A stretch of 64,000 bases of DNA. Source: Eutreptiella sp. 'Long Island Sound 2002' (taxonomy: Eukaryota > Protista > Euglenida). The notes below the pieces were generated by a model. That model searched no databases. It was not told the origin of the DNA and worked only from the letters and a program-made list of their open reading frames with translations. The stretch covers positions 190,526,001-190,590,000 of the forward strand of contig OZ038378.1 of assembly GCA_964036045.1 (NCBI GenBank). The letters are read 5' to 3'. Position 1 is the first letter of the stretch. The number at the start of each line of letters is the position of its first letter. Shown in pieces: positions 14,491 through 48,598 of the stretch. Position numbers and translations under genes: made by a program.

Positions 14491-14499
14491 GCAAGTAAC

Positions 14500-22800: not shown

Positions 22801-23302
22801 GTCTAACCGACAGCAAGATTCACCTCACCTGCCCCCTGTCCTGCTGGCGCCCCTATTTGAGAGCACAATGTCTACCCCGCGAAGGGACAGCACTCAGAGT
22901 GCGTCTGATGAGGACGTGCAACAATATGCCGTCCGGTGCTCTACCCCCCCCGATTTGCCCCCCACCCTGCTGGCGCCACTTTTTGAGAGCGTGATGTCTG
23001 CCTCACGAGCGGGCAGCACTCATCGTGAGTGCGATGAGGATATGGGTCAGTACGAAGTCCAGTACTCTACCCCACCCTCCGTGGGGGAGTGGCCCCCTAA
23101 CCCCTTTACCTTTCCCTCTCTTCGCGGAGCACAGCGTCTCTGCACGGAATTGCCTGGCATGGCCCGACAGGGCCAGGGATGGGTTCGTGACCCCCATGCA
23201 CGACACTCCACCATGCTGTACAGCATGCAGGAAGGTGCTCTGTCTTCCAACAGCGCGGAGGGGCTCATGAAGCATGGACGGGCCTCACGTGAGGCAACCT
23301 AA
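16619..23302 (+). pseudogene. ORF2: 2A-like peptide, AP endonuclease, reverse transcriptase, CCHC finger and long C-terminal extension; two in-frame TAA and a mutated catalytic motif
   Basis: ORFs 16619-18367, 18377-22237 and 22352-23302 share one frame. APE motifs INVT, LTETR, TDAN, RIDGI, GHKPV. RT motifs GLDGW, LRPLSV, DYVKCFD, GVLQGC, and CAHD in place of YADD at 19691-19702. CPYC...DEHILWAC finger. Confidence 0.9.
16850..16894 (+). other. 2A-like (StopGo) peptide DQILRCGDVHPNPGP directly upstream of APE
   Basis: DVHPNPGP encoded at 16871-16894; matches D(V/I)ExNPGP except E>H. Confidence 0.75.
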
Positions 23303-23461
23303 AGGACGGAGGGGGGAGCCTCTTGTCATACAGGGCGGCAGCTCTCCAGAAATCCGCGCGACTTGCCCCTTGGCTGAGTCTGGGGGCTGGAATGGGTAGA
23401 AGCCCCATGGACTATTGCTCCTTAATATGATTTCCTTCCCTAGCCCTAACCCTAATCAAGA

Positions 23462-24594
23462 CTGAATATTCGGACCGAGCTGGTGGGGGAGGGAACATTA
23501 GCTATGACTGGTGAGGGACATCAACAATGATTCACACATTGATGGCTCTTGACAAAGTGAAATCAGCTTGCAAGTGAACCTCATCACCACGAGGCCCGCT
23601 TTCAAGGCTTTTTGGACTTCTAAGGGGCCAAAATGCCCCAAAATGGGCTCAAAATGGGCTCATTTCACCCGTTTGTGCCCGTTTGTGCACCCCAAATGGT
23701 ATGGGATGAGGTTTGGAAAAATGTGTTTTTGACCCAATTTGACCCAAAACAGCCCATTTTCAAGGCATTTTGGCCACCACAAGCTCAAAACGGTCCAAAA
23801 ACACTTGTTTTAGCGTCGCACATGGCCTAGGATCATTTTTGAGAAAAGTCATCTTTTTGCCCCTATTGGACCCTGTTGACCCATTTGGGCACCCACCTGT
23901 TTGGGCTTGAGCTTGCAGCTTGCCGCAGCCTAGTGGGCCTAGGTATTGGGGTCTAGGCGTCCGTTTGGGCAATTCTGAGGGGTGGAAACCACAAAAAGTG
24001 GGGGGTTGCGGGTGGAGGAGGTGCCCTCGGAATCGCATTTTGAGCCATGTAGCCAAAGATATGGCCTATTCTTGGTTTGTGGCTGTCGGCATTTGGAGCT
24101 TCTGGGGGCCTTTTTGGGCCGTTTCCGGGACATATCATGGCGTTAGAGGGCCGCAAAGATCACGTTGACACGTGGAAGTCAAGCCGCACGTGAAGTGTAC
24201 CCACCGTTTCCCTTCGTTTGGCCGTTTTGAATGTGTTCTAGGGCTTTTTTGGCCCCAAAAATGGCTGTTTTTGGCCCTAAACTGCAGTTTTTGAAACCGT
24301 GGCCCGCCACTTGCGAATCCCGTTCCTGGCCGCCACTGTTGAGTTTCTCGCTCAACCTTTGTGTGATTGTACTTCACACCCATAGGTATCATGCACCAAA
24401 ATTTCACCCGAATGTGAAGCACCACGACGGAATTCTGATATTTTCCCATTTCGCGCGTGCTGCTGCTTGCTGCTTGCTTGCTGCTTGCTTGCTCGCTGCT
24501 ACTGCAAAACCTGGTAGGTGCACCCTAGACACTAAAAAGGGTTATAAAACCAAGACCGGTTCCACCAGCTCGGTGACCCTAGCCCTAATCAAGA
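23462..24594 (+). repeat. ~1.13-kb tandem repeat unit 1
   Basis: Period from aatcaagactgaatatt at ~23455 to the same at ~24588; contains (GCTGCTT)n and a CCCTAG/CCCTAA end. Confidence 0.92.
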
Positions 24595-25752
24595 CTGAAT
24601 ATTGGGACTGAGCTGGTGGGGGAGGGAACATCAGCTATGACTGGTGAGGGACATCAAGAATGATTCACACATTGATGGCTCTTGACAAAGTGAAATCAGC
24701 TTGCAAGTGAACCCCATCACCATGAGGCCCACTTTCGAGGCTTTTTGGACTTCTAAGGGGCCAAAATGCCCCAAAATGGGCTCAAAATGGGCTCATTTCA
24801 CCCGTTTGTGCACCCCAAATGGTCTGGGATGAGGTTTGGAAAAATGTGTTTTTGACCCATTTTTGACCCATTTTTGGTCCCAAAACAGCCCATTTTCAAG
24901 GCATTTTGGGATTTTCGGAGGACCAAAATGGGCCACCACAACCACAACAAGCAGTCCAAAACACTTGTTTTAGCGTCGCACATGGTCTAGGATCATTTTT
25001 GAGAAAAGTCATCTTTTTGCCCCTATTGGACCCTGTTGACCCATTTGGGCACCCACCTGTTTGGGCTTGAGCTTGCAGCTTGCCGCAGCCTAGTGGGCCT
25101 AGGTATTGGGGTCTAGGCGTCCGTTTGGGCAATTCTGAGGGGTGGAAACCACCAAAAGTGGGGGGTTGCGGATGGAGTAGGTGCCCTTGGAATCGCATTT
25201 TGAGCCATGTAGCCAAAGATATGGCCTATTCTTGGTTTGTGGCTGTCGGCATTTGGAGCTTCTGGGGGCCTTTTTGGGCCGTTTCCGGGACATATCATGG
25301 CGTTAGAGGGCCGCAAAGAGCTCGTTGACACGTGGAAGTCAAGCCGCACGTGAAGTGTACCCACCGTTTCCCTTCGTTTGGCCGTTTTGAATGTGTTCTA
25401 GGGCTTTTTTGGCCCCAAAAATGGCTGTTTTTGGCCCTAAACTGCAGTTTTTGAAACTGAGGTCCGCCACTTGCGAATCCCGTTCCTGGCCGCCACTGTT
25501 GAGTTTCTTGCTCAAACTTTGTGTGATTGTACTTCACACCCATAGGTATCATGCACCAAAATTTCACCCGAATGTGAAGCACCACGACGGAGTTCTGATT
25601 TTTACCCATTTCGCGCGTGCTGCTGCTTGCTGCTGCTTGCTGCTGCTAAACCTGGTAGGTCCACCCTAGACACTAAAAAGGGTTATAAAACCAAGACTGG
25701 TTCCACCAGCTCGGTGACCCTAACCCTAACCCTCGCCCTAACCCCAGCCCTA
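24595..25752 (+). repeat. ~1.13-kb tandem repeat unit 2, ending in degenerate telomere-like tract (CCCTAA)2-CCCTCG-CCCTAA-CCCCAG-CCCTAG
   Basis: Direct sequence comparison with unit 1; tract at 25718-25752. Confidence 0.9.
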
Positions 25753-26639
25753 GCTTGAACCCTATGCTAGGGCTGGGTTGGAGTTATTGTTTGGGTCCAA
25801 AACGGAGGAGAGTAATGGAGAGTGACAAAAGTAGCCATGAACGAAATTTGGGGGATCTTGTTCAGCCTAATCAACATGGTAGGATGCTTAGGGGGAGGGC
25901 AAGGGGAGGTAAAGGGAGCGTGCGATGGACCAACGCTTGGCCTTGGGGGCATGTACCCCCCAAATCGCCCCACCTGGACCCCACCCCCCCAACCAACCCT
26001 ACCGGACCTCCCCCCCCCCCCCGGGCAAAAGCCCTCCCAGACCCCCCCCCCCTCGCCCTCCGTTCCCCAGAGAAGCCCTCCTCGGCGGCTACCCCCCCCC
26101 CCGAGCCCCCCCCCCCCCCCCCCTAGGGGGCCTTCGGCGTACTTCTACTGGGCGGGGGGTCGCGTCCAAAAGCGAGGAGACGCCCCCCCCGTGAATGAGA
26201 TATTTCTTTCGTTCTTTTTTCCCACTAAGGGCAGCCCGAGGTTATCAGTGGCAGGATTTAGTTACCAACAGCAGTTGACACCCAACCGGCGGACGTTGAT
26301 GCTTAATCAGTCAATAGTCAGCGAACGCCGAGGGAACCGTAGGTCGGCATTTTTCCTTTGTTCCCCCTTTTTGGCATTGATGACAGCCCTGGTCACAAGT
26401 AGATTTAGATCATTGAGCAATGCCTACACATGTCTTCAAACAACGTCATCGCCCGCCCCCCCGCCCACTGCTCTGCCCCCAGTCCCCCCCCCCCCTCAGT
26501 CCTCATGTCTCTTGTTCTGCAGCGGTCCTCAGCCCAAACAATCCCCCAGCACCTCAGCACTCTGACTGCCTCACGTGCGCCAACCCCGTCTCGGGCCTCC
26601 CCAATGCCGGCGTAACAACACGTCGCACCGCGCGCCCAC

Positions 26640-26906
26640 ATGGCGTCCTCGGTGCACTCGGTGCGGTCCAGCTACTCCTCCGCGTTTGGGTCGGAACCCG
26701 AGCACACGTCCGTGATGGCGTCCCTCAATGCCCAGCTCCAGACGGAACTGGCCTCCGTCCGCTCCGGGGGTGGCATGGTGACTCCGCCGCAGCACTTCTC
26801 CGCCCTTCGTGCGTGGAAGCAGCGCCGCCTCACACCACGCAACACCCCTGCCATGACCCCGCGGTCGTGGGCGTCGTCACAGGGGTCACCACGTGTCACA
26901 TCGCAG
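26640..26906 (+). CDS. Probable first coding exon of plus-strand host gene (MASSVHSVRSSYSSAFGSEPE...)
   Basis: ATG 26640, upstream polypyrimidine-AG at ~26505-26522, GC3-rich codons; 3' boundary uncertain. Confidence 0.5.
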
Positions 26907-27038
26907 GCCCTGACAGCGCATGAGAGCCAGACCGCCAAATGTATGGTCCCCCTGCCCCATTGTGTGACGTGGTGGACCCTGCACCCTGACGTCCCATCCC
27001 CCAGTCATGTCCTCTCCATGGTTTGTGGCACCCCTGAT

Positions 27039-27417
27039 GACAGAGCGATCGGCTCTCCTGCACTGCATGATAAGTCAGGGCATGCAGATGGAGGAGCAAG
27101 GGCTCTGCATCCAAAGAGCTTCGGTGGCAAAACTTTGACCTGACGTGGTGTCAATGGTATTGCGCTATTGACTGTGCTATGTTTGTGGGAAGGAGGGGTG
27201 TTTATCCAATTTTTGTGGCCAAAGTGTTTGCTCTCCGTCGGGGACATTTTTGGGAGAGGTACAAATCAGGATGTTCCGGGTGTATTTGCCGCAAAAGTAG
27301 AACAAGTACTGCACCAAGAATGGTCATAAATTTGGCGTTGTAAGGTTCTACCATCTTGGGGATGGTGTAGGAGGGTGTGCTTGGCTGTCAGGATTGTTTT
27401 TTTGAACCATCTATACC
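27039..27417 (+). repeat. Left copy of 379-bp direct duplication flanking the LINE (candidate giant TSD)
   Basis: gacagagcgatcgg...gaaccatctatacc, matches 37184-37562 with one mismatch seen (27054). Confidence 0.93.
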
Positions 27418-27504
27418 ACACCACCTAGGGACAGCAAAACTGCCCCGAGCGCCCCGACTAGCCCAACGACGGACACCACCGAGGTTCACAGCCCCGGATC
27501 ACGG

Positions 27505-28539
27505 ATGACCCCCACAGGAGGTCTAGACATCGAGTGTTCACGATGCGGCATCCGAGATTTCTATTCACTTTGCTGCAGCACATGTGGCGACCACCTCTGG
27601 GGTCTCGACGTCCATGAAGGGATGGCACCGGCACCAGTACCTGGCCTCGATGTTGAAACTGACGTGCAAAAAGCAGCATCGTCATCCACCCCTGCATCAG
27701 GCACTACCTCCTTTCTGACTGGGTGTGCACAACGCGAACCGCCACCGAGGGGCTCGCCACAACCCGAGCGACCACGGGCTGCACACTCCCCGCAGCTCCA
27801 CGTCGGCTGCCACATGGACCAACGGCCGACGGCCAGTCATGGGCCGCAAGTTCCGGTTTACCAGTGTGGAGATGTCCAACGACAACAAGACCCAATTGCA
27901 TATCTCATCCCAAGTCAAACGGATACAGATGATCCCGACTGGGGATGGCTCCCCGCCGGGTTGCTACACCGCCATGTGGGGCCCCCACCCCCTACGGATG
28001 CACAAGGTGACTCCAGCTGGGGATGGCTCCCTACCGATCTGCTCTATCGCCCGGAGGAACTCCCGACCTCTGCGGAAGCTCGTGCCTCACCAAGGTCCTC
28101 ATTGCTTCAGCTCGGGGAGGCCCATGGCGAACATGGAGAGGTGTCTTCGCTTGATGGATCGGGAGGGGGCCAATACTCCATTGAAGTTCGGAGACAAGAC
28201 CTCGAGCGTTGCCCTCTGTGCTACGAGGATGCCTTGCTGTTCCCGCTATTGTGTCACCCACTGCACCGGCTGTGCACCCTATGCGCATATGACCCCCGGC
28301 TTCAAGGATGCCCATGGCGATGCGCATCCCATGGACTCACAGGGCACCTCCAAGAGCCACCCCCCGCCCCCGGAGGGACCCCGCCCGGAGACGACGATTA
28401 CATGGACCTCGACACAGAATATCCCGAAGTGGACTTCAATCCAACGCACTCGTCTGGGGGGGTTTCCTCGGCCTCCCCTTCCTCCCCCAGTGCACTCCCC
28501 ATGCGAACTATATTACAAGATGTGGTGGATTCAGAATAG
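27505..28539 (+). CDS. ORF0: N-terminal Cys cluster, decayed 2A-like motif, C-terminal RING-like C3HC4 finger
   Basis: CSRC...CCSTC; VPVYQCGDVQRQQDP at 27850-27894; C-x2-C-x10-C-x3-H-x2-C-x2-C-x8-C-x3-C at 28210-28323. Confidence 0.7.
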   Translation: MTPTGGLDIECSRCGIRDFYSLCCSTCGDHLWGLDVHEGMAPAPVPGLDVETDVQKAASSSTPASGTTSFLTGCAQREPPPRGSPQPERPRAAHSPQLHVGCHMDQRPTASHGPQVPVYQCGDVQRQQDPIAYLIPSQTDTDDPDWGWLPAGLLHRHVGPPPPTDAQGDSSWGWLPTDLLYRPEELPTSAEARASPRSSLLQLGEAHGEHGEVSSLDGSGGGQYSIEVRRQDLERCPLCYEDALLFPLLCHPLHRLCTLCAYDPRLQGCPWRCASHGLTGHLQEPPPAPGGTPPGDDDYMDLDTEYPEVDFNPTHSSGGVSSASPSSPSALPMRTILQDVVDSE

Positions 28540-28563
28540 ACACGCCTCCAGCTCCATTTTGAG

Positions 28564-31500
28564 GTGCACTTCCCCGCGGTGCGCGAGACTCTGCTGGGGT
28601 CGTATGCCGATCTACATGTGCACGAGTGTACACGCCACCTACAACACTTCTTGAGGTTGACAGAGAGGGTCTTCTACGAGAGCAAGCGAGCAATTTTGAG
28701 CTATGCACTCGACTCAGCGACATCATCCACCGCACCCCCGCCACCACCACCACCGCCTCCTGGACCCCCTACGTCAGTTCCTTACCGCCGCAACTCCCAT
28801 ATTCCGGTGGTACAATGTGGCGACGTGGAGCGCAACCCGGGCCCCACATCCCCCACGCTACCCGGGTCCCCTGGACACCGGGGCCTCGAGTCCATGGAAT
28901 TAGACCCCATGCAACTCCAGTTCACGCCGACAAGAGATCCCTCTGAAGGTATCGAGGGCGCAGAGCCAACGGAGTTGTATCCTCTAGAGATGGGCGCAGC
29001 CTTGGATGGCTGCCCATCACTTGGGCCACTGGACCCCTATCGGCTCGACCGCCCGTGCAGTGCGTTGTATAACGCGGCATTTAAGGAGGCCATGGGCGAT
29101 ATTCGCCAGTACAGCTTCCCCAACGAGGTGTCGTGGGTCGTGGCGGCGGTCACCGCTCATCTCGACGAGTGTGTGTACCTTCGGATCCCGCCCGACATGA
29201 CACTCACCAAACCCACCGACCCTGGTTGGTTAGGGCTCATTTTCCAAGGACACGTCAAGCTCAATGCGGAGAGGTGGGACCACCGCATCTTCGCGGTGGA
29301 ATCCTTACTTCCGCAGTCGCACCAGCAATCTTGGGTGGCGGACACTGAGGTCACCTTCTTGGCAATACCCGTGCCGGTGGCACAACGCATCACTGAAGAA
29401 TCGGCCGCGTACGCCGCTGACACGTCTGACATGCTGCGCACCATGGTCCATGGCCAGCTGGAGTCTATCATCCAAGTGCAATCACACGACCAAGCCATGG
29501 AAGACGGAGCACCTCAGTCCCCCATGTATGTGACCCGCCCCGCTGTAGCGGGGGTGGAGGAAGAAGAATTGAAGCAGGCGGAACCAGCGCTGGGGAGTTA
29601 CCTCCTGCAACTTAGGCGGCTCCAGAGGGGCATGCGGTCGTACTTGACTTCCAGGCCGGAGCGCAAAGTCACGAATTGCCACCACCGCATTTTGAACTCC
29701 ACGGGTGAGGTATTCTTTGACACGCGACGCACGCAACTGGACCACAGGGTCACGGAGGACATCCTCGCCCATTATGACGTCACAGTGGAATACGGCAGCG
29801 ACGGCATCCACACCGTATTCCACAACGCCACGCCAATACATGCACAACGGTGCATCCTACACACCGAGGTCACCCAAAATCTGGATCCCTACTACGGGGA
29901 CCTCACCAATCGGACCGGAGTCCTCGTCCTCCCGGATGAACAGGGGACAAAAAAGGGATTCATGGAGGCACAAAACAGGCCCAACGCAACGCCTGTGGTG
30001 TGGGGCGGTACGGAGAACGACGCCATCCGGGAAATGGTGGATGTGCTGGCCCAAGGGCAAAAAGCGCATGCGCGTAAGCGTCTACTCATGGTGTACGTGG
30101 CCAACAAAAACCGGGACTCGGCCATTGCCACACTGCGTCTAGAGCAAGTCGAAAGACCCTCGCTTCGTGCAGCCAACAGATATCTGGCCGGGGTCACAAA
30201 GTGGACGGGCACGGTGAACGCAAAGTACGATGGGTGGACAGGTGATGAAACCTTTGCCCCCGGATTTGCTGAACCGCTCCCCCTCATGGGCGTCCTGTTG
30301 GATAACTCGGCTGAGTGGCGACCTGTGGAGGCCGTTGAGAGTCGTGAGTTGGACGTGCAAAACATGGACCACGATGATTTGTACGGGAACATACAAGACG
30401 GCGGGAAGTTCGCCATTGAGGAGGACACGGATACGGTTGTCCTAGAGTTCCCGGAAGCCATGAAAGTCAACACGCTCCATCGCATGTTCAAGTTCCTCAA
30501 CGAAACAGACATGGAGGTCCAAACCAGTATTGCCATGCAGCTACCCTCTAATAGCTTCCCGTTCATGGGGGCTATGGAGGCTCGCGCGTCGCGGTCTCAA
30601 TCCACGGCATACGAGGTCCGCCTCCCAAGACGACTTGTGGCCAAGGCCACGCGAGTGGTGGCCGAGGCAGCGGAGGCTAGATACAAACAAGATGACCAGC
30701 TAGTGGGCCCCTTCATCATCAACGAATCGGCACGCGAGCTCTGGATTGTGCGTCAGCGCTTTCGGGTGGAAAAAGAGGACAAAATCTCCTCTTACGAGGA
30801 TATCATACGGGACTTCCGCCAGAATCACCAGTTGATTCAGGGCACACTCATGGAGCATGTTGTGGGGATGAAGCCCGTCGACAATTATCGGTTGATGGTG
30901 CAGTTCAAGACGACCCTAGACTGCCTGACACTCGCCTCTGTGTTGAAACAAATCAACCATTACGAAGCGCAAAACGTGCTCACCAACGACATGATGTCGG
31001 GAGGGGTGTCACGGAGTAAATGGGGCTACGCGGCAGTCAAGGCACGAGCCCTGCTCCCGAACCCCGACCGCTCGCACGCTACGGAGATCTTTTGGGGAGC
31101 ATCGCTGGGAGTCTCCGAGTATGAATTGCGAGTGACCGTCGCCAGTTTTGGTCGGTACTTGACGTTGGCCGAGGAGCCTAGCTTCTACATGGAACCCACT
31201 TACGTGCATTATGTGAGGGCCACCTACGAAAACCCCCAAAGTGCGGGTCTTGCGGCAGGGCAGTTCCTTAAGGTTAAAGCTGGGGTCCTCCAATGTACCA
31301 CGGGCGACTCTACCCAGGATGCTCTCATCCGGGACCGCATCGATTCCATGTTGTTGGATGTGGTCCCGGACTCCTCTCAGGTCCGCCTTCCACATCGCCT
31401 CCAGTACGCTGCGAATTTCTTGGGAGCCAAGGAGGCCATGGCAAAACTGCATGATGAGCACCTCAAGACGAAACGTCTCCACGAACCCGCCATGGACACG

Positions 31501-31746
31501 CAAGAGAAAATGATGCAATGGGATACAGAGGACCCTCTCCTCCAGCCGAAGCGTGCCAAAACGGAAGCCCGGGACGCCCGTCTCCGCATGGACACGTGCC
31601 GACCTACGGCCTCCACCGCCAGCGACCTTAAGATCAAGACCAGTGCCTCCAAGCCACAGCTGGCTGCCCCGGCACATAAACCAACTGTAAAGCCCAAACC
31701 GCCCACGCCCGCACGGCGGGGTGTACCCAAACCAGCACGCAAGTGA
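28564..31746 (+). CDS. ORF1 (1060 aa, gag-equivalent by position) with an internal 2A motif near its N-terminus
   Basis: Uninterrupted ORF in the same frame as ORF0 and the APE ORF; HIPVVQCGDVERNPGP; basic C-terminus; no confidently named domain. Confidence 0.75.
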   Translation: MHFPAVRETLLGSYADLHVHECTRHLQHFLRLTERVFYESKRAILSYALDSATSSTAPPPPPPPPPGPPTSVPYRRNSHIPVVQCGDVERNPGPTSPTLPGSPGHRGLESMELDPMQLQFTPTRDPSEGIEGAEPTELYPLEMGAALDGCPSLGPLDPYRLDRPCSALYNAAFKEAMGDIRQYSFPNEVSWVVAAVTAHLDECVYLRIPPDMTLTKPTDPGWLGLIFQGHVKLNAERWDHRIFAVESLLPQSHQQSWVADTEVTFLAIPVPVAQRITEESAAYAADTSDMLRTMVHGQLESIIQVQSHDQAMEDGAPQSPMYVTRPAVAGVEEEELKQAEPALGSYLLQLRRLQRGMRSYLTSRPERKVTNCHHRILNSTGEVFFDTRRTQLDHRVTEDILAHYDVTVEYGSDGIHTVFHNATPIHAQRCILHTEVTQNLDPYYGDLTNRTGVLVLPDEQGTKKGFMEAQNRPNATPVVWGGTENDAIREMVDVLAQGQKAHARKRLLMVYVANKNRDSAIATLRLEQVERPSLRAANRYLAGVTKWTGTVNAKYDGWTGDETFAPGFAEPLPLMGVLLDNSAEWRPVEAVESRELDVQNMDHDDLYGNIQDGGKFAIEEDTDTVVLEFPEAMKVNTLHRMFKFLNETDMEVQTSIAMQLPSNSFPFMGAMEARASRSQSTAYEVRLPRRLVAKATRVVAEAAEARYKQDDQLVGPFIINESARELWIVRQRFRVEKEDKISSYEDIIRDFRQNHQLIQGTLMEHVVGMKPVDNYRLMVQFKTTLDCLTLASVLKQINHYEAQNVLTNDMMSGGVSRSKWGYAAVKARALLPNPDRSHATEIFWGASLGVSEYELRVTVASFGRYLTLAEEPSFYMEPTYVHYVRATYENPQSAGLAAGQFLKVKAGVLQCTTGDSTQDALIRDRIDSMLLDVVPDSSQVRLPHRLQYAANFLGAKEAMAKLHDEHLKTKRLHEPAMDTQEKMMQWDTEDPLLQPKRAKTEARDARLRMDTCRPTASTASDLKIKTSASKPQLAAPAHKPTVKPKPPTPARRGVPKPARK
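28801..28845 (+). other. Canonical 2A (StopGo) motif IPVVQCGDVERNPGP
   Basis: DVERNPGP at 28822-28845 is an exact match to D(V/I)ExNPGP. Confidence 0.85.
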
Positions 31747-33255
31747 CCCCAGTCTGGGGGCACGCTGGGATTCTACCTGTGGGTCCTGTGCCTCCTCGTC
31801 TGCCTGGAGGGTTGTGTTAGCCACGTCATGCGGCACTCACTACTCCTCGATATTCATGAGCTCGTCATGGTGGGGGCAGGACACGGGATTACATGGTACG
31901 TGGGACCGTCACGGGTGAGGCGCCGTTCGCCCCGACGCACATGGTGGGCCCATGGCATGAGATGGGAACACCGTGGGGCGCGCATTTACCGGGTCTGGGA
32001 CAGGGGGCGGCCTTTCAGTTGGCTTGTTTATAAGACGTATCTACGGGGGCACCTGGGCCCCTACAAGCCGTGGGAAGCCCTTCTACTGTTGCTTGGGGGA
32101 GACATCGAGCTCAACCCCGGGCCTTCAAGTGGTCAATGGGCTGCCGTGTATACCGCACTGAACAAGGGAGTGGTCAAGTCTGCTACCGGTTGCACGCAAC
32201 CAAGTGGCAATGGCCTCCGGTGGGCGTCCTTCAATATTGGGGGCCCCACGGTTGATTGGGACCGATGGGTCACCGTCGTACAGCTCTTGTTTGATATGCG
32301 CCTCGACATTGTCGGCTTACAAGAAGTTAAGCCTACCTTCCCCAACATAGAGGCGGCAACAACATTAACCTTCCCCGAGTGGCAGATCTACTATCACCCA
32401 CACCCGTCCGGGACCATCAATGGGGTGGCATTCCTGGTCCGCAACACAATGGACCACTTCGTGCTCAAGGACGGCAATAAACGTGCCTCGCTTTTTGCAG
32501 ACCCAGACGGGACCTTTCTCGGACTTACTTTGCAGCTTCCCAACAAGCCACGGCTACGGGTCCTCAACTACTATGGACTCCAAACTGCAGCCACCAAGAA
32601 GAGGCAAGATGCCTTTGTTGAGACACACCAATACGATGTACTCATGGGCGACTTCAACGACTCTATTTGGAGCAACACCCCAAGTCGGTTTTGGCACGAT
32701 GACCTTCTGAACCGCCGTCTATACGACCCGCTGCACGAACTATGCCCCGATGGGTCTGTACAGGCGGGACACACCAGAGGGTGCCACCGCCTGGATGCCA
32801 TCGTGGTCTCTTCGCGGTGCTGGGGGAATGTTAGCCCCATGACATACCATATTGTCGCCATGCCCACCTCCGACCACCGGCTCGTCCTAATGACTACAGG
32901 CCTCACCTCCACGGACTGTGAGTCCTTCATCAAAGCCACGCACCCTGCCAAGAAGTGGAATGTGCAGCAAGAGCGAGCCGCCGTGCAGGAGACACAACGC
33001 ATACTCGCCGGGCAAGACACCCCAATGGACGCAGTATCACGCGCTGATGCGGTCCTCAAGGCGGTGGCGCAGGCCGTCATTCGACAGGGGAAGCGCACCA
33101 AGCGGACCCGTCTCAAAACTAACACACAACAGGGCACAAACACTTCCAAGTGGTCAAGAAGCGCATCGCGCAGGAACTGCGCGAAGTGGCCAACAAGCGC
33201 CTCTATACCATGCGTCATGCTGCCCTCCGCAAGGATGGGGTATTCTTCCGCTTGA
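31747..33255 (+). CDS. ORF2 N-terminal part: 125-aa leader, 2A, AP endonuclease
   Basis: Frame stays open after TGA 31744-31746; APE motifs FNIGG, LQEV, GDFND, RLDAI, SDHRLV. Confidence 0.85.
   Translation, partial: PQSGGTLGFYLWVLCLLVCLEGCVSHVMRHSLLLDIHELVMVGAGHGITWYVGPSRVRRRSPRRTWWAHGMRWEHRGARIYRVWDRGRPFSWLVYKTYLRGHLGPYKPWEALLLLLGGDIELNPGPSSGQWAAVYTALNKGVVKSATGCTQPSGNGLRWASFNIGGPTVDWDRWVTVVQLLFDMRLDIVGLQEVKPTFPNIEAATTLTFPEWQIYYHPHPSGTINGVAFLVRNTMDHFVLKDGNKRASLFADPDGTFLGLTLQLPNKPRLRVLNYYGLQTAATKKRQDAFVETHQYDVLMGDFNDSIWSNTPSRFWHDDLLNRRLYDPLHELCPDGSVQAGHTRGCHRLDAIVVSSRCWGNVSPMTYHIVAMPTSDHRLVLMTTGLTSTDCESFIKATHPAKKWNVQQERAAVQETQRILAGQDTPMDAVSRADAVLKAVAQAVIRQGKRTKRTRLKTNTQQGTNTSKWSRSASRRNCAKWPTSASIPCVMLPSARMGYSSA
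32077..32124 (+). other. Canonical 2A (StopGo) motif ALLLLLGGDIELNPGP
   Basis: DIELNPGP at 32101-32124 preceded by a poly-Leu helix, as in characterised 2A peptides. Confidence 0.88.
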
Positions 33256-35057
33256 CCAAAAATTGGACCCGCGGACCATTGAAGCCCACGCAAAAGCAAC
33301 CCAGTCCGGACCTGGCGCGCGCTTTGCTGGCCAACTTCAGTGGCAACCCCCCCTATGACATGGCGGCCATTGAAGCACTCATCCCACAACTCATCCCACA
33401 GGGGCACATGACTGACGACCCACCAAGCTTCGATGAGTTCAAAAGGGCATGTATGGGCAAGCGCAAGAAAGCCGTGGGCCCTGATGGGGTTCCGCACCGC
33501 TTGCTGGGCATGCTGCCAGACGATACGCTGCACACATTGTATGAGGGGGTGCTAGAAGTATGGAGAACAGGAGATATCCCGCAGCATTGGCTGCGGTCTG
33601 AGGTGGTGTTGATGTACAAGAAAGGGGATCCTGACCGCCCCGAGAATTATCGACCCATTGCCGTGACCAACAGTATATATCGTGTTATCATGAAGTTGTA
33701 CAGGCCCCGTCTGCAGCGCCTTGTGGACCGGGTTGCTAGCCCCGAGCAGTATGGGTCAAGGCCTTTGCACACCGCAACTGAGCAAGCTGCAAACTTAGTC
33801 AACTCCCTCCACGAGCACGAAATGGAGGGCCGGGAGCCTTTTGTGGTTTTGTTGGATGTAGCCAAAGCCTTCCCGTCCGGAATCCATGAGGTCATTTTCT
33901 CCATCCTGAACCATGCCGGGCTCCCGCCGAACTATGTGAACGCCTTCCGCACGATCTATGCACATACTGACACATACACGGACATACAAGGAGAACGGAT
34001 ATATTTCAAGCCCACGCGGGGCGTCAAAGAAGGATGCCCCTGCTCCCCGCTCTTGTTCGCTATTGTATATGAGTTGTTGATCAAGCGTTTGATCGCCAAG
34101 TACCCGGACACATTCGTTTATGTTGACGATATTGCCATCATTGTCAAAGATTATTCTGAATTGGAACGACTCCTCACCGACCTCTCCGCTTGGGGGTCCC
34201 AGATTGGGATTCAGTTCAATCCTAACAAGACAGAAGTGTATCACTTCCACAGACCACGGTCCTCGGGCGCTACCTCAGGGGGTGCCCAGCAGGCAAAGCA
34301 CATCTGGTGGGGACAACATCGCCTCGACTTCAAGGATCCCATGTTCACCTACTTGGGCCACACCATCGCTGGTGTAGGGTATAGGGGCAAGGCTAGGGAT
34401 GCGCTCTTCGCCGCCCTGCAAGCTCAGGTAGCCGCATACACCATCCTCCCGTTGACAAGCTTTGAGCGGGCACAAATCGTCAATTCCGTACTCATCCCCA
34501 GGTGGGTGTATAAGAGTCTCTTTATGTGGGATGTGTGTTGGGGCAACCGCATGGAGACCGCCTTCGAAGAGTTTGTCCTTCAGGCTCCCCGCGTGGAAAA
34601 GTACCTGCAGTACCGCCTCTACACGGACGTCACCGAAGGGGGACTGGGCCTCCACAGTGCGTCCTGGGCCGGTTTATGCGCCCTTATTCAGCTAGTCCAA
34701 CGGGCCTTGCGAGTTCCACACAGGCCTATGACAAGGCATACCAACTCAGGTCATCTCCCACACATGGTGGAGAAGTACCGCAAAATCCTGCTGTCCTTTG
34801 GTATGGAAATGGGGCGCCTCCCTCGCGCCGGCCAATCGATAGGTCGAAAGGCACTCAAACGGGCCCACGATGACCTCGAGTCACTCTTCGATGATGAGGA
34901 CTCCGACGATTGCAGGTTTGAGTCGCTTGTACCCCACCAGTACCTCCAATCCATGCGTCCCAAGAGCGGCACTAGTCCCGTGCAACCCAACGTTGAGCAG
35001 TCAGGCCGTGCCTGGCACCAACATGGGGCAACCCACGGGGTCGACGTGGTACAGTGA
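33150..35057 (+). CDS. Reverse transcriptase segment of ORF2 (frameshifted relative to APE)
   Basis: KAVGPDG, YKKGD...NYRPIA, LLDVAKAF, GVKEGCPCSPLLF, YVDD. Confidence 0.92.
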   Translation: MVKKRIAQELREVANKRLYTMRHAALRKDGVFFRLTKNWTRGPLKPTQKQPSPDLARALLANFSGNPPYDMAAIEALIPQLIPQGHMTDDPPSFDEFKRACMGKRKKAVGPDGVPHRLLGMLPDDTLHTLYEGVLEVWRTGDIPQHWLRSEVVLMYKKGDPDRPENYRPIAVTNSIYRVIMKLYRPRLQRLVDRVASPEQYGSRPLHTATEQAANLVNSLHEHEMEGREPFVVLLDVAKAFPSGIHEVIFSILNHAGLPPNYVNAFRTIYAHTDTYTDIQGERIYFKPTRGVKEGCPCSPLLFAIVYELLIKRLIAKYPDTFVYVDDIAIIVKDYSELERLLTDLSAWGSQIGIQFNPNKTEVYHFHRPRSSGATSGGAQQAKHIWWGQHRLDFKDPMFTYLGHTIAGVGYRGKARDALFAALQAQVAAYTILPLTSFERAQIVNSVLIPRWVYKSLFMWDVCWGNRMETAFEEFVLQAPRVEKYLQYRLYTDVTEGGLGLHSASWAGLCALIQLVQRALRVPHRPMTRHTNSGHLPHMVEKYRKILLSFGMEMGRLPRAGQSIGRKALKRAHDDLESLFDDEDSDDCRFESLVPHQYLQSMRPKSGTSPVQPNVEQSGRAWHQHGATHGVDVVQ

Positions 35058-36957
35058 CGGCAGCCTGTTGGAAGGGCGTGCTGGCACAGGGGTGGTCAAC
35101 GGACCTATGCGCATCCAGGCGAGAGTACCGGGCCCGCAGGCAATTTATAGGGCAGAAATGTACGGCGTATGGATCGCGGCGTGCCTAGCCCAACCGGGGG
35201 ACTCCATCGTGCTTGACAACCGGGCTGCGGCTCGATGCGTCTCCAAGCCACCCAGCCCACAATCGTCCGACTATGATTTGCACGACGCAGCGTACCAGCT
35301 TATCTCCACCAAGGCACTCCAAGTACGTTGGGCACGTGGGCATCGGGACCCTAAAAAGGCGCATAGTTTGCAAGATTATCAGGACAGGATTGGCAACGAA
35401 TTGGCCGACCTCGCAGCCCGAGCGGGCAGTACCATGCACCCTTGCCGTGGTCTGGGCAGCACATCACCCGCGGATATCCTCTTGAACAGCCATGTAATGC
35501 CGTCCCCTGCCCGTAAGTGGATCATCAAATCACGCCCCCAGAAGCTGGTACCCGAGGCGCATTGGACGTCATGGCTGCCTTTGCGCGCGGTCAACCGAGA
35601 TAAGTGGGGTCCATGGCTGTGGGGGACACTGCGATTGCCGGGGTATGGGGCACCCTGGGAAACCGGGCCGGTGCTGTGCCCACGGTGTGGACAGCGCCAT
35701 GGCCTTGCAGTGCAGGAGTGCCTCTTGTCATGCCCCTCCGAATCCCGGTTTTGGGACATTTGGACCGACGCATGGGAGACATGGAAACCGGAGGCAACCA
35801 AGTGGCGACAAACGGCGTCCGCAGACGAACTGCGCATGTGCACCCGCTTGCAGTTCCCACACTCCCTTCAACGATCCTTCCTTCCAGTCCAGGCGCACCG
35901 GAGGGTGGTAGTTGCCACATGGCACTTCCACGTATTCCAGCGATTGCAGGCGTGGGTCGTTGACAAGCAGCAGCACGCCCCAACTTTCGTCAGCAATAAG
36001 CGGCCCACGCACATCGTCCCACCTGTTGCTGGGGCCCTGCCGCAGGTAGCTAAACCTACGGCCCGCAACATTTGGAACCACGTGAGAGGCGTACTGTCGA
36101 TCCCGCCGCGATCAGAGCCACGTTTCACAGATACTGCGCCCACGGTGGAGGAACTTCGGTGGCAATTGACACAAGCGGTCACCACTGCCGAGCGCACGTG
36201 GGTCTTGGAGGCCATGGCCCGGCACCACCATGTAGCACCGCCGCGCAAACGGCCCAGAGAACCGTCGCCGCCACCGGCACAGGCTCCGGCCTCACCGCCG
36301 CGCGAGTCTCGTGAAATTCATGCCGGACCCTTCCTGGAACAGGCCAGGCGGGTCATGCTACACGCCCAAATGCAGGCCGCACGACTCTGCCTGGAAGAGG
36401 TGGCGCAGGCACTCGCCCGGCAAGCCGTCACACAGAAGTCCCTCTTCTTGGCACACCACCACGAGCACTTGTGCCGGCAAGCGTACTTCCTCTACAAGGA
36501 ACACACGACGCGGTGGTATGTAGAAGCGCAACAGGCGGTCTACCACTTGTCCTGGATGGCGGATTCTCGCCGACTACGCTTCCGCCAGTGGCGAACGGCT
36601 GTACTCCTCGAGGCGCGGTCCACGGTGTCGCGCAAGCTCGCCGTGGCATCCTCGTGTTGGGAGCAGGCACATGTTTCGCTGTCCACCGGCATCCAAGCGG
36701 AAGAAGCATCCGAATGGCGGCATATGTCCCAAGTGCACGCGGTGACCCTTACGGCCTTACGGCGGACGACTTTGTCGGACCCCCGATGGGACATCCGAGG
36801 GGCCACCGCACAGCGCATGAAGCGCTTGCGGGACGAGAACCGACCCGAGACACACAAGAAACGGAGGACAGAGACGCCGGAGGTTCCTAGTGATCTCCAG
36901 GATATGGAAATCCCGCTGGAGGACATGGGCGATGTCATAGTCTTGACTGGATTGTAA
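34870..36957 (+). CDS. RNase H, Cys finger and C-terminal segment of ORF2 (frameshifted back to the APE frame)
   Basis: WYSDGS, YRAEMYG, VLDN, WARGH, GNELADLAA; CPRC...ECLLSC. Confidence 0.88.
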   Translation: MTSSHSSMMRTPTIAGLSRLYPTSTSNPCVPRAALVPCNPTLSSQAVPGTNMGQPTGSTWYSDGSLLEGRAGTGVVNGPMRIQARVPGPQAIYRAEMYGVWIAACLAQPGDSIVLDNRAAARCVSKPPSPQSSDYDLHDAAYQLISTKALQVRWARGHRDPKKAHSLQDYQDRIGNELADLAARAGSTMHPCRGLGSTSPADILLNSHVMPSPARKWIIKSRPQKLVPEAHWTSWLPLRAVNRDKWGPWLWGTLRLPGYGAPWETGPVLCPRCGQRHGLAVQECLLSCPSESRFWDIWTDAWETWKPEATKWRQTASADELRMCTRLQFPHSLQRSFLPVQAHRRVVVATWHFHVFQRLQAWVVDKQQHAPTFVSNKRPTHIVPPVAGALPQVAKPTARNIWNHVRGVLSIPPRSEPRFTDTAPTVEELRWQLTQAVTTAERTWVLEAMARHHHVAPPRKRPREPSPPPAQAPASPPRESREIHAGPFLEQARRVMLHAQMQAARLCLEEVAQALARQAVTQKSLFLAHHHEHLCRQAYFLYKEHTTRWYVEAQQAVYHLSWMADSRRLRFRQWRTAVLLEARSTVSRKLAVASSCWEQAHVSLSTGIQAEEASEWRHMSQVHAVTLTALRRTTLSDPRWDIRGATAQRMKRLRDENRPETHKKRRTETPEVPSDLQDMEIPLEDMGDVIVLTGL

Positions 36958-37183
36958 CACCCCGAGAGGTCCGGGAGGACGCGCATACCCGTGCAAACGG
37001 GGCGACAGGGGTGGGGCAAGGCGCAGGACTCGTTCCTCCCGCCACCCCGCCGCAGCCGTCTTGGTGAGGGTAGGTCATACCAAACCCATACCCAAAGTCG
37101 GCCCTGTCACTGACCCATGACCTGCTATGTGTACTCTCAATGGACACTTGGTGGAACTTCGGTCACGAGTTAAAAAAAAAAAA

Positions 37184-37562
37184 GACAGAGCGATCGGCCC
37201 TCCTGCACTGCATGATAAGTCAGGGCATGCAGATGGAGGAGCAAGGGCTCTGCATCCAAAGAGCTTCGGTGGCAAAACTTTGACCTGACGTGGTGTCAAT
37301 GGTATTGCGCTATTGACTGTGCTATGTTTGTGGGAAGGAGGGGTGTTTATCCAATTTTTGTGGCCAAAGTGTTTGCTCTCCGTCGGGGACATTTTTGGGA
37401 GAGGTACAAATCAGGATGTTCCGGGTGTATTTGCCGCAAAAGTAGAACAAGTACTGCACCAAGAATGGTCATAAATTTGGCGTTGTAAGGTTCTACCATC
37501 TTGGGGATGGTGTAGGAGGGTGTGCTTGGCTGTCAGGATTGTTTTTTTGAACCATCTATACC
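37184..37562 (+). repeat. Right copy of 379-bp direct duplication (candidate giant TSD)
   Basis: Begins directly after the A12 tail; unrelated flanking sequence resumes at 37563. Confidence 0.93.
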
Positions 37563-40500
37563 TTCCTCTCGGCCTGCGTAGTGCCATAGTGTTTTCTTTA
37601 GCACAAGTGGTCCACAGATTATCTGTTCTGGTGTCTTTTGCATGTAGTCTTGACCTGACGGGGGAGATAGGGAACAAGACTGTGCAACTGGGTTGTCAAA
37701 GGCTGGTTTGGGCACTGGGCCCTGGGTATCCGACGCGACAACCCGCCAGTGTGTATGATCCTCATCCCCCCCAGAATCATCATTTATTCCCCACACCCTC
37801 AAGGCCACTGAACGTGCCAATTGGGCCAATAAGGTGCCAAAAAGCGAAGAAAAACATTTTCTTGTCACTTTTGTGGGTTTGCATGCATATGGCACCCGCC
37901 ACAAGCCTCCCAGATACCCGAAATGGCCAACAACTTTTTTTGTGCGCCATTTTTGGCAGTTTTTGGAAGCCAGCACCTTCACTTGTGGGTCCCTTATGCG
38001 GCAGCCACTACTGAGTGTTTTGTTCAAGCTCTGTGTGCTTCAACTTCATACTCTAGGGATCATGCATTTCCTTCCTGGGACGGGGGGTGGGTGGGTTGAG
38101 GACCCCCTCCCTCCCCCGCTATCAGGTCCGAAATTCGATTGGCCCTGGGGCCTGCCAGCTCCCCCACCCTTGTGCCCCATATCGTCATGGTTACTTGAAG
38201 CCCCACCCTCCCTGTCTCCATTGGTTACCTGTTCGGCCCCAACAGGGAATGATCTTGAGCAAGCACCCCAGCCGCCGCGCAGCCACAGTCCAGTGAGCGA
38301 GCAAAGTGAAAGCACGCCGAAGAGCATTCCACATGGCATTATGGATCACAGGTTGTTTGCCTCGGGTGCATGCATGGTCTTGCATGATGTACCCCTGAAG
38401 GGGGTCGTGGGGGGGGGCCTCCTTTTTCTTCCCTGCTCCACGACAGATGGCCCTGCTCACCGCTTGGCTGAGTAGCACCGAGCGGGGGGGGGGGGGGATT
38501 ATGTGGTCGGTTGGTTGTTGTTTTGTGGTGGGGATGCTCCCCCGGACCATAGTAACCGCCATCACCAACACCACCAGCACCACCAACAACCTGAAGGGCT
38601 AACACCTTCTTACCCGGGCAAGGTCTTGGGGGGGGGGGGTGAGGGATCACAGCTAAAAAACTTGCAAACATTATTTTCGTGCGGGATCCGCACGCAGTCG
38701 ATCGCCAGTTTGTGCGTATTTGATGGCATCAATGTGAAGGATTTATCCGCATTTGCCCCCTCAACCACCATTTCCCTCTCCATTTGCCACGTATTTCTGA
38801 TTCCTGCAACAGCTTTGTCCCTCTGTTCAAATGCAACGCTTTCTTGTTCCAAGCTCTGATGCGTCCAGCACGATCCAAGGAGAGTTCAGCGCCACCATAG
38901 CCACGTTGGTGGCCAACCGGCAAAAGCAGAAGCAACCATGCAGAACCCTCCAGGAAATAACAGCAAACATTTGGAATCTGCAACCGTTGACGTGGAGCAG
39001 GGGACAGGCTTGTCTGGGCCACACTGATCATCCTTGTTGTCATCCTCCCCCTTCCCCGCCTTGAATAGTAACTGCCCCTGAATAGCAATCGGGCAGGGGG
39101 GGGGGGCTCACTTTTTTTTTTCCAGTTTTCCAAATCCCCTTAGAAGGTTGGATATTAGCTTCTCCTGTGTGTTTTCTGATTGGACAAGGTAGCAGCATTA
39201 TTGGTGTATTGCTGTGTAGTTCAAATTTTCTTGCATCCAAGGCACTACACTGTACCCTGTATCATGCAGAACACTTATTTTTTTCGCAATTTCAGCCATG
39301 GATGTCCGTTCCAGTGGCCCCTGTTGAGCATGTGCAGCTCTTCAAAGTCAAAGACTCCAAACAAAGTGGCGCACAGAGGCTGTCTCTAAGTAGAGCTGAA
39401 CATGCATCACAACAGGCAGTTTCCAGGTCTTTTGGTGGTTCATATGCACTAGTGTTTGCATGTTTTGCTTTGTGTCACGTGTCTTTTGTCCCCCAGGGTG
39501 GCGAAGGAACCGTCACTTTGGGTATGTTCCCCTGGTGGTGTGAGGATACCGTTGCGTGCAGGTGGCTACTGTTCAAGTGGGGGGACCCCACCCCCCAATG
39601 TCCTCCATCCCCTCCTGTTTTTTGTGGTGCCCCTCCCTCTCCGCCCTCGCTCTCGCTAGGGTGGTGCAGCCCAGCGGGGTCTAATGCAAATTTCCTTCAC
39701 TGACACTGTGTATCGGGCGCTTTTGCAGGCTGCATGCGCTGTGCACAAATCCCTGCACTGCCCGTCCCTTTGCAGTCACTTGCAATTTTCCTTGATGCCG
39801 GAAGAGGAGGCCACTGTCTGCCATTTGAGCCTTGCGGAAGTACAAGAGCTGCGACGTGCCCCTGCGACTCCGGGATCGGTGGTGGGACTGGCGACCTCTC
39901 CGTCTGCCAGTGCGCCGCGTCGCCCGGTGGTTCGCATGCCTCGAATCAACATGTATGCCTTTCTGGAGGGCTAAGGCCTCCCTTGCCCCCCCCCCCCCCC
40001 CTCTCCCCGCAACTGATGGACACCTACACGCGAAGCGTACGCACTCAGCCGACGACTTTTGGCGCTTTGGGCAACGAAGATGGTGGTGTGGCAGGCGGTC
40101 GGCGCCAACTGCGGAGAGCAAACCCTTTGTGGCTCCCCTCCCTCATCCGCTCGTTGGTTGAAATTGCTTAATGCCCCCCCTTCGCAGGCCATGTGTTGCA
40201 CTTCCAACATCATTCGTGGTGGAAAGTGCCGTCCTACTTTCACAGTCATGGAGGGGCGGAAGGGGAAGGGCTGCATGTGAAGTCTGCTGTCAGCGGAGCG
40301 GACATCAAGGGGGCAGTGATGGGGCAACGGCGAGAGCCATCCATACGTTGCAGCTGTGATGGGATACCTTTTGCCTCAAGTACTATGGTCCAATGCACTG
40401 TCAAGAACCCAGGCCAAGAAGGGGGTTGCCTGTTACCTGTTTCACAACGATTTTGCGTTTGGTGCCAGTAGTTGCTGCTGTCTAACTGCCTTCAAGTCTG

Positions 40501-40639
40501 CATACTCTGCCTTTGCCGACAAGGAACTAATATGAAAAGGGGGGGGGGGGGGGTCTGGGTGGGTCCCACAGAGGGCCACTTATTCAAAATTGATTTTCCC
40601 TCGGCCAAATTTTTCGTGAAGAATTTTTTTGGTGGATGG

Positions 40640-40790
40640 GTCTCAGAGCCAAGGTTAGCAATCACCTTGGTTTTGCCACAAGGGGTGGGGGGGTCATGTA
40701 CAAGACCTTGGCAGTACTAGCCAGCCGGCCACCCCCTTGATGCTTCAGTTGAAGTGTTTTTTGTAGGGACTGGACCCTATTCAAATATTC
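40640..40790 (+). repeat. Dispersed repeat segment, related copy at 45480-45630
   Basis: Shared ccaaggttagcaat.accttgg...gcttcag.tgaagtgttttttgtagggac.gga.ccctattcaaat. Confidence 0.65.
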
Positions 40791-40794
40791 CCAT

Positions 40795-43700
40795 CACCAA
40801 ACGAGCTGGAGGCTGCCGTCCATGGGGAGGTTGAGGCGACTGGTGCTGGGCGCCAACTGGCTGCGGAGGGGGGGGGGGCGTTTGTTGACAGGCCTGTGTT
40901 GGCCCAGCCACAGCCCAAGGGGGCCAAATATGTCTTTACGAGTGATGTCAACATTCTGCAGACTTCCAGCCCCGAGTACGAGGGGTGGGCCGCTTGGAGG
41001 GACTCCATGGAGGCCACGTTCAGGGCATTCATTAGGGACAACCACGCGGCAAAAATGGCGTGGGAGTACCGCATCATGCTCATGAAGCGGGGCTTGAATC
41101 AGGTGGGGGTGGATGTTGCCGTACAGTGGGTATCGCCTGGGCAGGAAACCCATGAAACGCTGCTGGCCATGGTGCTGTAGGAAACACACGCCCAGTGGTC
41201 CCTTGATGTTGTGGCGGCCGCATGGAAGTGCCGGGCGCAGGCGCCTAATGTGGGTGCGACTCCGAGGGACCAGCAAGCCGATGCTCTCGCACCTCCGCCC
41301 ACCGACCTGGTACATGCGGAAATAGCGGCTTTGGAGGCGCGCCCGTCCCAGCTCCGTGGCCCGTCCATCCTGCAATTGTATCTTGGCGAGCCGCAGGAGG
41401 TGGCGAAGGTGGCGGTTAGCCCCTTGCTATATGCGTGGCAGAAGTAGTTGGTGGACGCCCTGGTCATCTTCTTGCAGGCCGAGGCATCTCGGCATGGTCT
41501 GGCCTAGGCTGGCGCCCCCGGTGACTTAGCTAAGAGTGTTGGGAGGGCGCTTTGGCCCAAGTTGGGTGGCGGGCTGATGAGTTCACCGCACACCCAAAGA
41601 CGCACAAAGCTAGTCCTCCAGGTGTGTGCTTCCGCCGTGGGCTCCATGGCCACTGTGCCAAAGACTGCCCCTCGCAGGGACAACATCTGGCGCGTCAACA
41701 TCAATGGCGGGCGCTGTAGCCGTAGCAACAGGTGCTCAATCGGTGGGCAAATGGGGGCTTCACTGTGCAGAGTGATCAAACATTGTACACCACCTTTAGT
41801 ACTGGGTGTACCTACGACGCCCGTGGCCTGCCACCGTACCCGTGCATCCGCTGCAGTAGCATGCATGGTGGCACAAAGCCCCGCCCAGGCCCACCCATCG
41901 TTCCCGACGGCGTTCCCCCCCGCAGCACCAGCCGGCACCGCATCCGGTGCTCCTGCCACAGCCATGCAGTGCCCTTGCCCTAGCAGCCCTTTTGCTGAAG
42001 CGGGGGGGTTTCCCCCCTAGATGCCTTGCCTCCCTTGGCAAACCCGACAACGGGTGCACGGGGGAGGAGGGATGTGTGTGACCGTGGTAAGGCGGCCGAG
42101 CTCCATGGGGTCGCCACTGTCATCTACGACTTTTGGGCTACCGACTTTGGGCGCGAACCCAAGATGCTTGCCGTGCGCCGGTGGGCGGAAAGCACAGTGT
42201 TTGCATGGGCTCGCGAGTTGTGGCATGTCGGCCGCGCACCTGTACGCTGGACAGTCCAGAGCGGAGGCCCTTGTACGGTACCATGTCTACCTCGTGGTGG
42301 CGGGCAAGTCCCTGCATGGCCGCTCTGCGCGGCACCATTTCGGGCTCAGAAGCTCTAGTTGCCGCGGCCCACCATCCGCCGATACATTCGGCCATTGCCA
42401 CTAGGGCTTGAGTCGCCTATGACACCGAGCTTGGCCAGCAGCTGTGGGGCTCCTTTGCCATGTTGCGCACCATTTCCGAAGCAATGTGCACCGAAACCAA
42501 ATTTGCTACCCCCCACACCAACCGCCATGCGTGCACGCAAATATATACCGAGCCACAACAAGGGTTGTGGTCAGGCGCAAGTAGAGGAGCCCGCACCCAC
42601 AGAACAGGTTGCGACAAGCCAAGTGAGCGCCCACCCAGCGCAACAGCGCACATGTCTAGACAACGGCAGAACCTCGGCACCAGTCAGTACACCCCAACCC
42701 AACTACCCGGGGTAAGACTACATTACCCCCCGCCCCCTCTCTTGGGTGTGCGCATGCAGGCCGCCAGCCCAGCTCGCCCACACAACCGGGTGCATAAAAA
42801 ATTTAAGCCACAACGCGTGCCTGGGAGCACAAACAACACTGACACACACAAGAGCGCACGTGCATACAAATCAGCCAATGGACAGGGCTATGCGTCCATG
42901 GGCGGGGTATTGGGCGTGACCGCCCCTCCTACGCGTGGTTTTGTACCGTGTATTGCTGGCGCCGAGGCCCGCGCGCCACCTTGGGTGTACGGCCTTGCGG
43001 TTGGGCGTGTGCAGATTGGTGTGTAGTGTTGCGTTTGTCACAGAGCCTGTCACAGACCCTTCACTCTATGCCATGCATGGCAAGTGTGCTGTCTCGGCGG
43101 TTTGGTGTCATTTGTGCTCTAGATGTGGTTCGGCAGTTGGGCCACCGACACATTGATTTGGTTCTTGACAATGTGGGGGCGATATGTCAGGTCCTTTGGG
43201 GCAAGGACTCCACTGTGCTGGTTGCATAGCATCGCATTCTTCGACGCATTGTGTAGCGCTTGAGGTGGCAAGGGGTTTTTGTGGGTGCCGCTAGCCCCTC
43301 TAGTTTGTGCAATATGCGCCCGGTCTAGCCCAAGTTGCTTGCCCATCCACGCCAAGCTTTGTGTGGCATTCGAGACAGATTTCGGGCTAAATAGGAAACC
43401 CTTCCTCGCCAATGTGCCGCCGCGTGGCGGGCAACATGGATGGTCATGAGGCGGTCACGGCCAACGGAAACAGCATGTTGTCGAGATACTGCACGGCGAC
43501 AACCGGGGTATCTAGAAGCTCAAACAGGATGGCACCAATCACATGCTGGACCAGACTAGGTGCCTGGTGCCAGCCAAAGGGCACACGCACCAACACATAG
43601 GTGGTGCTAGCTGCAGCCACCCTTACCGCCCCTGCCATGCCACACAGGAGGCACAAACTCAAGTAGCAGTTGCTAAGGTCAATTTTAGCACCCCAGGCAC

Positions 43701-46102: not shown

Positions 46103-46201
46103 GGCTGAAACAGGAACCGTGGAGGAGGTGTTGGAGGTGTTGCCCTGTCTGAGCGGCTTCGTTGCTTACTCTCTGAAGATGCTCCCCGAGCCCTCGTTTA
46201 G
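46103..46201 (+). CDS. Host gene exon (AETGTVEEVLEVLPCLSGFVAYSLKMLPEPSF), followed by a GC-AG intron
   Basis: tttctag| acceptor; 99 nt; ends AG|gc; joins in frame to the exon at 46371. Confidence 0.6.
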
Positions 46202-46370
46202 GCACCTGTGCTTAAGGAGCGATGCTTTCCCCCACCCCTGCATCCCTACCAGACTGAGGTTCATCCTGCCCCATCCGCTTCCATTTGTTCCCAACCGCTT
46301 TCTACCCCGTAGGAGGCTCCTTGTGTCAACCCCCAACAGCATTGTCTCGAGCTCTGGCACTTCCTTTCAG

Positions 46371-46600: not shown

Positions 46601-46737
46601 CGTGCACTAGAGAGAAGGGAGAGGGGAGGGAGGGAAGGACGGACAGACGGAGGGACGGACGGACGGACGGAGGGGAGGGACGGATGGAGGGACGGAAGGA
46701 CGGATGGAGGGAGGGAGGGGGGGAGGGGAGGGAGGGA

Positions 46738-48566: not shown

Positions 48567-48598
48567 GGGGAGGGGAGGGAGGGGAGGGGAAGGAGGGA

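Follow-up and report, generated by a model that had tools for sequence, protein, structure and literature searches.

A 379-bp direct repeat, very probably a target-site duplication, around a 5'-truncated APE-type LINE in a euglenid genome

The DNA analysed here is a 64,000-nt stretch of the Eutreptiella genome (the window), which carries a LINE copy bounded on both sides by the same 379 bp; the features concerned are listed in Table 1. Neither reading frame of this copy is intact: what is left of ORF1 has a premature stop ending at 28539, where the frame is open in the intact copy L003, and two 1-bp indels (near 33133 and near 35024) disrupt ORF2, which L002 and L003 carry as a single frame. 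The ORF2 pieces of the window were searched separately, and the domain work made use of the intact protein P0026 of another copy. With an APE endonuclease and a reverse transcriptase (RT) in ORF2, a poly(A) tail and 5'-truncated copies, the element has the features of an APE-type LINE. Among solved structures, compared as PDB sequences, its RT matches human L1 ORF2p best (E 3e-17), slightly above R2Bm (2e-15). An alignment of 39 sequences revealed no conserved PD-(D/E)xK-type acidic RLE motif after the zinc knuckle, and at the level of sequence, as distinct from predicted fold, neither Pfam nor the Atlas returned a hit for an RLE domain.

Table 1. The LINE copy, its parts and the flanking repeats, in window coordinates.
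Feature	Position	Strand	Remark
Probable TSD, left copy (T at 27054)	27039..27417	+	identical in ENA contig L007
Stretch 75% like inverted 12905-13027, within the duplicated DNA	27180..27298	+	sequence comparison
5'-truncated LINE copy, 9,766 bp	27418..37183	+	98.4% identical to intact copy (L003)
ORF1 remainder; natural end is the stop at 31746	27418..31746	+	
2A-like motif GDVERNPGP in ORF1	28801..28845	+	
2A-like motif GDIELNPGP, before the endonuclease	32080..32124	+	
APE endonuclease domain, PF03372	32224..32877	+	
Reverse transcriptase domain, PF00078	33621..34367	+	
RNase H domain	35041..35430	+	weak Pfam hit; the intact copy shows acidic motifs of catalytic type
Cx2Cx3H..C zinc knuckle	35677..35733	+	
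A12 tail	37172..37183	+	
Probable TSD, right copy (C at 37199), directly after the A tail	37184..37562	+	identical in ENA contig L008

The RT cluster comprises 131 close relatives in a second, long-read assembly (ENA ERZ25074135), from which eleven loci (L001-L011) were taken for study. The match between the window copy and L003 runs from 27417 to 37183 and then ends. L002, L003 and L010 continue for at least 2.4 kb further upstream, with different sequence, so the window copy is 5'-truncated, a property absent from the first-pass annotation; the missing part would span at least 2.4 kb and probably more than 4 kb. At full length the element measures at least 14 kb, and it has a front end derived from LHC sequence as well as several 2A-like motifs. 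L003:3062 was considered as its 5' end and discarded, as L010 and the family protein P0055 extend further. The front end (L003 738-2582; L010 1-517; P0055 aa 43-201) is a degenerate, intron-less piece of a light-harvesting (LHC) polyprotein, which in P0055 lies in frame with ORF1; the LHC-like gene in a family copy has polyprotein-type linkers, and its best solved relative is LHCI-2 of PDB 9vfj; this gene, along with the spliced leader of L009 described below, marks the host as a euglenid. The family is also present in another dataset, since the ORF1 of P0054, on a 3.1-kb JGI/IMG contig, is 99.7% identical to that of L003; scans at the protein level gave no match in JGI metagenomes or in viral contigs. 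Several copies have been altered internally: the older L010 by a 1.5-kb inversion (4460-5980), L001, which sits in a satellite of about 145 bp, by a 1.6-kb duplication (10727-12371 and 14896-16537), and L004 by a 6.5-kb insertion (3190-9888) that interrupts it within ORF2.

The first-pass annotation had described the flanking 379 bp as direct repeats with one mismatch, the right copy following the A12 tail immediately and unrelated sequence lying outside both. Base-by-base comparison bears this out, with a single T/C difference and no gaps. The right copy starts at the base directly 3' of the tail; the left copy stops where the LINE begins, and one C (27417) there is assignable to either, giving a 5' junction microhomology of 1 nt. 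The repeats thus adjoin both LINE ends exactly. Identity is lost abruptly at base 380, there is no extension to the left, and a 99.7% match of this length with its ends on both LINE ends appears far beyond chance.

Exact protein look-ups located the same locus in the second assembly, where both junctions recur base for base on separate contigs. One (L007) is identical to window positions 21973-30894, including the left repeat with its T and the 5' junction; the other (L008) starts inside the LINE at 35893, matches 35893-51963 save for three homopolymer indels, and spans the A tail, the right repeat with its C and the right flank. This support covers 21973-30894 and 35893-51963, the middle ~5 kb of the LINE (30895-35892) being unconfirmed. 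No substitutions occur over 25 kb, which suggests that ERZ25074135 is probably a different assembly of the same sample, and not a second individual; it carries the filled site only. At about window position 30895, L007 switches to a more decayed family copy (L007 8923-19600) and it ends in a 4.4-kb satellite with a 50-bp unit. Since the partner contig dead-ends in the same LINE, a misjoin between copies is the best reading of the switch, the alternative being a real rearrangement or ectopic recombinant. Either way, a misjoin in mid-LINE cannot yield two junctions of TSD geometry that share 379 bp, which disfavours an artefact.

The 379 bp are absent from nine other family copies (L001-L006 and L009-L011), a search of other loci that had been proposed from the outset, and every copy has its own, different flank after the tail. 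On this comparison, we regard the repeated sequence as host DNA and not as part of the element. Part of it resembles the inverted stretch 12905-13027 of the window (Table 1), so old host repeats of a dispersed kind contribute to the target. The 379 bp had no exact match in a scan of JGI metagenomes.

The age of the duplication can be set against that of the insertion. In 5,125 nt of ORF2, the window copy has 16 private substitutions (15 non-synonymous, 1 synonymous), a ratio that marks them as neutral changes acquired after insertion. At ~0.3% per copy, ~2.3 mismatches would be expected between the two 379-bp repeats, and 1 is observed (P ~0.34); the duplication would thus appear to match the insertion in age, in a test of weak power. 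Private mutations are evenly dense along the copy (0.25-0.49%), and it shares derived bases with L004 at 17 sites, on both sides of the L007 switch point, against 1 each with L002 and L003. With the same relative along its whole length, the window copy looks like one insertion. The reading as a target-site duplication (TSD), offered on geometry in the first-pass annotation, is thereby strengthened by the host origin of the repeat, the reassembly of both junctions and the matching age, and we consider the duplication very probably genuine; all other readings taken together are improbable.

A length of 379 bp is not, however, what the family usually leaves behind, a possibility that the first-pass annotation had raised conditionally. 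TSDs were counted in the six other copies for which both ends are visible (L001, L002, L005, L006, L009 and L011); L003, L004 and L010, in which the element extends further 5', were left out of the scoring, and L002 is itself truncated. TSDs measure 21 bp in L002, 17 bp in L009, 14 bp plus a G run in L011 (with a short templated insert at the 5' junction) and up to 12 bp in L005. None was detectable in L006, and no long match was seen at the ends of L001, in its satellite; such absences are less reliable than a TSD that is found, because contigs can be misjoined inside long copies. None of the six exceeds 25 bp (95% upper bound about 39%), and the targets, with unrelated flanks, have no sequence in common. 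From these lengths, the 379-bp case is read as the long tail of a variable distribution and not as a fixed family property.

Two of these loci deserve a separate description. The 17-bp TSD of L009 encloses a single 10-kb insert (2712-12807) comprising, in order, a spliced leader, presumably that of Euglena, an uninterrupted 1,183-aa ORF with a guanylate/adenylate cyclase domain, ~3.6 kb of non-coding sequence, 2.8 kb of the LINE 3' end and poly(A). It looks like a chimeric retrocopy of a host mRNA and the LINE, although its 5' part may instead come from the front end of a different element. L002 (3080-3126 / 16478-16524) and L011 (1542-1635 / 2794-2887) also contain near-exact direct repeats of 47 and 94 bp, respectively, with unrelated flanks; these may be TSDs left by other inserts, and their second copies are not preceded by an A tail.

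In the standard model, the span between the first nick and the second-strand break sets the length of the TSD (PMC2666801). Applied to this locus, the model would place the first nick on the bottom strand between 27038 and 27039 (left-copy coordinates); the element RNA would be copied from its A tail, with reverse transcription stopping after ~9.8 kb; and the top strand would be broken, or would already have been nicked, 379 bp downstream, vs the 12-21 bp usual in the family. This distant break may have been made by the host. At that break the new DNA would then be joined, using no more than 1 nt of microhomology, and the two 379-nt overhangs would be filled by strand displacement to give the two copies. 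On balance we lean toward this account, a genuine TSD produced by a distant second-strand break during one event of target-primed reverse transcription by an APE-type LINE. Against it stand the lack of any empty allele, only the filled site being seen in ERZ25074135, and the nature of that assembly, whose source is probably the same sample and whose contigs are broken or misjoined within the LINE. No inverted repeat or hairpin joins the two cut sites, and nothing in the sequence marks the second one. The duplicated DNA folded alone gives a z of about -2.7 by a crude shuffle, but -1.8 or -1.5 once flanks are added or the other strand is taken, and we have not counted this.

Distant second-strand cleavage and a template jump were the two mechanisms put forward in the first-pass annotation, and they are still the best two, although the sequence cannot separate them. 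A jump would likewise create the TSD at insertion: a stalled cDNA would move to the top strand, or to a nascent + strand RNA, 379 nt downstream, copy back past the first nick and be resolved by annealing to the left flank, giving an identical product with no second nick needed at +379. The composite insert of L009 suggests that the family RT can switch templates, L011 has its short templated 5' insert, and the truncation of the window copy implies that the RT did leave its RNA. On the other side, the microhomology at the jump site is just 1 nt, equal to the chance level, the junction has no extra or rearranged bases, and no clean exon was found upstream of the site (a candidate at 26523-26940 was rejected, as no frame is open across the stretch). 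We view a jump as possible but the less probable origin of the duplication.

Readings in which the repeat is not a TSD fare worse. Two family members might have inserted separately into homologous chromosomes, at sites 379 bp apart, and later recombined inside the LINE or been merged by the assembler, in which case the single mismatch would be allelic. Copy switching does occur, at least in assembly, as L007 shows; but in a family with no common target, it is improbable that two hits would fall on the same strand at that spacing, and the even density of private mutations gives no mosaic signal, so we give this scenario little credence. Very unlikely, too, is a duplication older or younger than the insertion, either a tandem pair into whose exact seam the LINE inserted or a product of later repair: the window does contain other local duplications (14498-15292 / 23779-25733 and 4052-4743 / 7292-8033), but this history requires a hit at one exact base without a TSD of its own, and the duplicates match the LINE in age. 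An assembly artefact would be in keeping with the failure of the second assembly to cross the LINE and with the use of assembled sequence as the evidence; it is hardly credible given that both junctions, each with its own mismatch base, stand in separate contigs and that a mid-LINE misjoin cannot produce their geometry. That the 379 bp belong to the element, as an LTR-like terminal repeat or transduced DNA, merits virtually no weight, as they are missing from L001-L006 and L009-L011, longer copies have different sequence upstream of 27418 and the flank after the tail differs each time; nor is a terminal repeat present in every copy, as in LTR or split-repeat retrotransposons.

Long TSDs have precedents. 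The first-pass annotation had treated the 126 bp of R9 as the exceptional value, a benchmark that is not supported, given that Dualen, cultured-cell L1 and ZfL2-2 reach 0.1-6.8 kb. Human L1 in HeLa cells produces TSDs >100 bp in up to 10% of events (Servant et al., PMC5223499); in cells without nucleotide excision repair, the median is 1,495 bp, and the authors' model for long TSDs is a distal, unrelated nick (PMC5223499). For zebrafish ZfL2-2 in DT40 cells, 1 of 25 TSDs was long, at 1,228 bp (Suzuki et al., PMC2666801). These elements resemble ours in being APE-only, with an A tail or intact 3' end and mostly short TSDs, a minority reaching hundreds to thousands of bp, for which a distal second nick is held responsible. 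They differ in that the long TSDs come from engineered cell-line insertions and are frequent mainly without nucleotide excision repair, whereas the euglenid copy is natural and aged and its element has RNase H and 2A-like motifs. By analogy, the 379-bp event may work like these long-TSD events.

Natural insertions in an alga offer a second comparison. Dualen-4b_cRei of Chlamydomonas reinhardtii makes duplications with a median of 900 bp, tentatively ascribed to its two nucleases; Dualen has both APE and RLE, and more than half of its insertions have duplications >50 bp (PMC9977147). Both systems show variable long duplications around natural algal LINE insertions. In the euglenid family, by contrast, 0/6 other copies have long duplications. 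With no RLE motif detected, the two-nuclease explanation does not apply, and both findings set the family apart from Dualen (RandI). R9 of bdelloid rotifers, with its 126-bp TSD, was the earlier record as cited in PMC9977147. It shares a TSD far over the usual range, but it is rDNA-specific and of fixed length, whereas the euglenid family has no common target and its lengths vary. R9 is of the RLE type; unrelated flanks and TSDs of 12, 14, 17, 21 and 379 bp place our family outside R9 and other site-specific LINEs. Further comparisons are the L1-group LINEs with RNase H (Proto1, plant and algal L1) and ingi/L1Tc of trypanosomes. The euglenid element resembles these in its order of APE, RT, RNase H and zinc knuckle, its poly(A) and its 5' truncation, an affinity to the L1 group being suggested for the RT by the PDB match, and it resembles L1Tc in having a 2A-like motif before the APE domain; it differs in its length of at least 14 kb, its LHC-derived front end and its several 2A-like motifs. 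Our literature search, mostly outside subscription journals, found no paper on TSDs of Euglena LINEs.

We take the 379-bp TSD to be real and unusually long, a natural example of a published phenomenon for which longer cases are known in other LINEs. The length of a TSD preserves the site of second-strand opening, a step in the still poorly understood second half of LINE integration; the present case contributes a natural instance, made in a euglenid by an APE-only element, for which a second nuclease is not needed. A single case changes little by itself. If a heavy tail were found across families, host repair would be implicated and LINE insertion would be a regular source of small segmental duplications, which standard TSD finders, with their short windows, would miss. 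More tentatively, TSDs of 0.1-3 kb might be a host property common to several unrelated APE-only LINE families in this euglenid, for example in a host without a repair step that would hold the second nick near the first. Long L1 TSDs arise in mammalian cells deficient in XPA (PMC5223499), and trypanosomes appear to be without XPA (PMC12222486). Were this so, the genome would hold, in thousands of copies, a natural record of second-strand cleavage positions.

Other mobile DNA lies elsewhere in the window. A second, unrelated APE-RT LINE (15277-23461) has a TSD that measures about 24 bp and includes CCCTAA, and sits in a repeated unit of ~1.15 kb, of which an empty junction is seen near 24577. 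The 90.6% identical copies at 4052-4743 and 7292-8033 represent an element of ~740 bp with GGGGGCGCCC-like ends, which looks like a dispersed non-autonomous element and not a TSD. Finally, at 59546-61381 and 61550-61922, a 611-aa ORF adjoining a 138-bp tandem repeat encodes a C17orf113-type zinc finger, which we take to be hAT-like.
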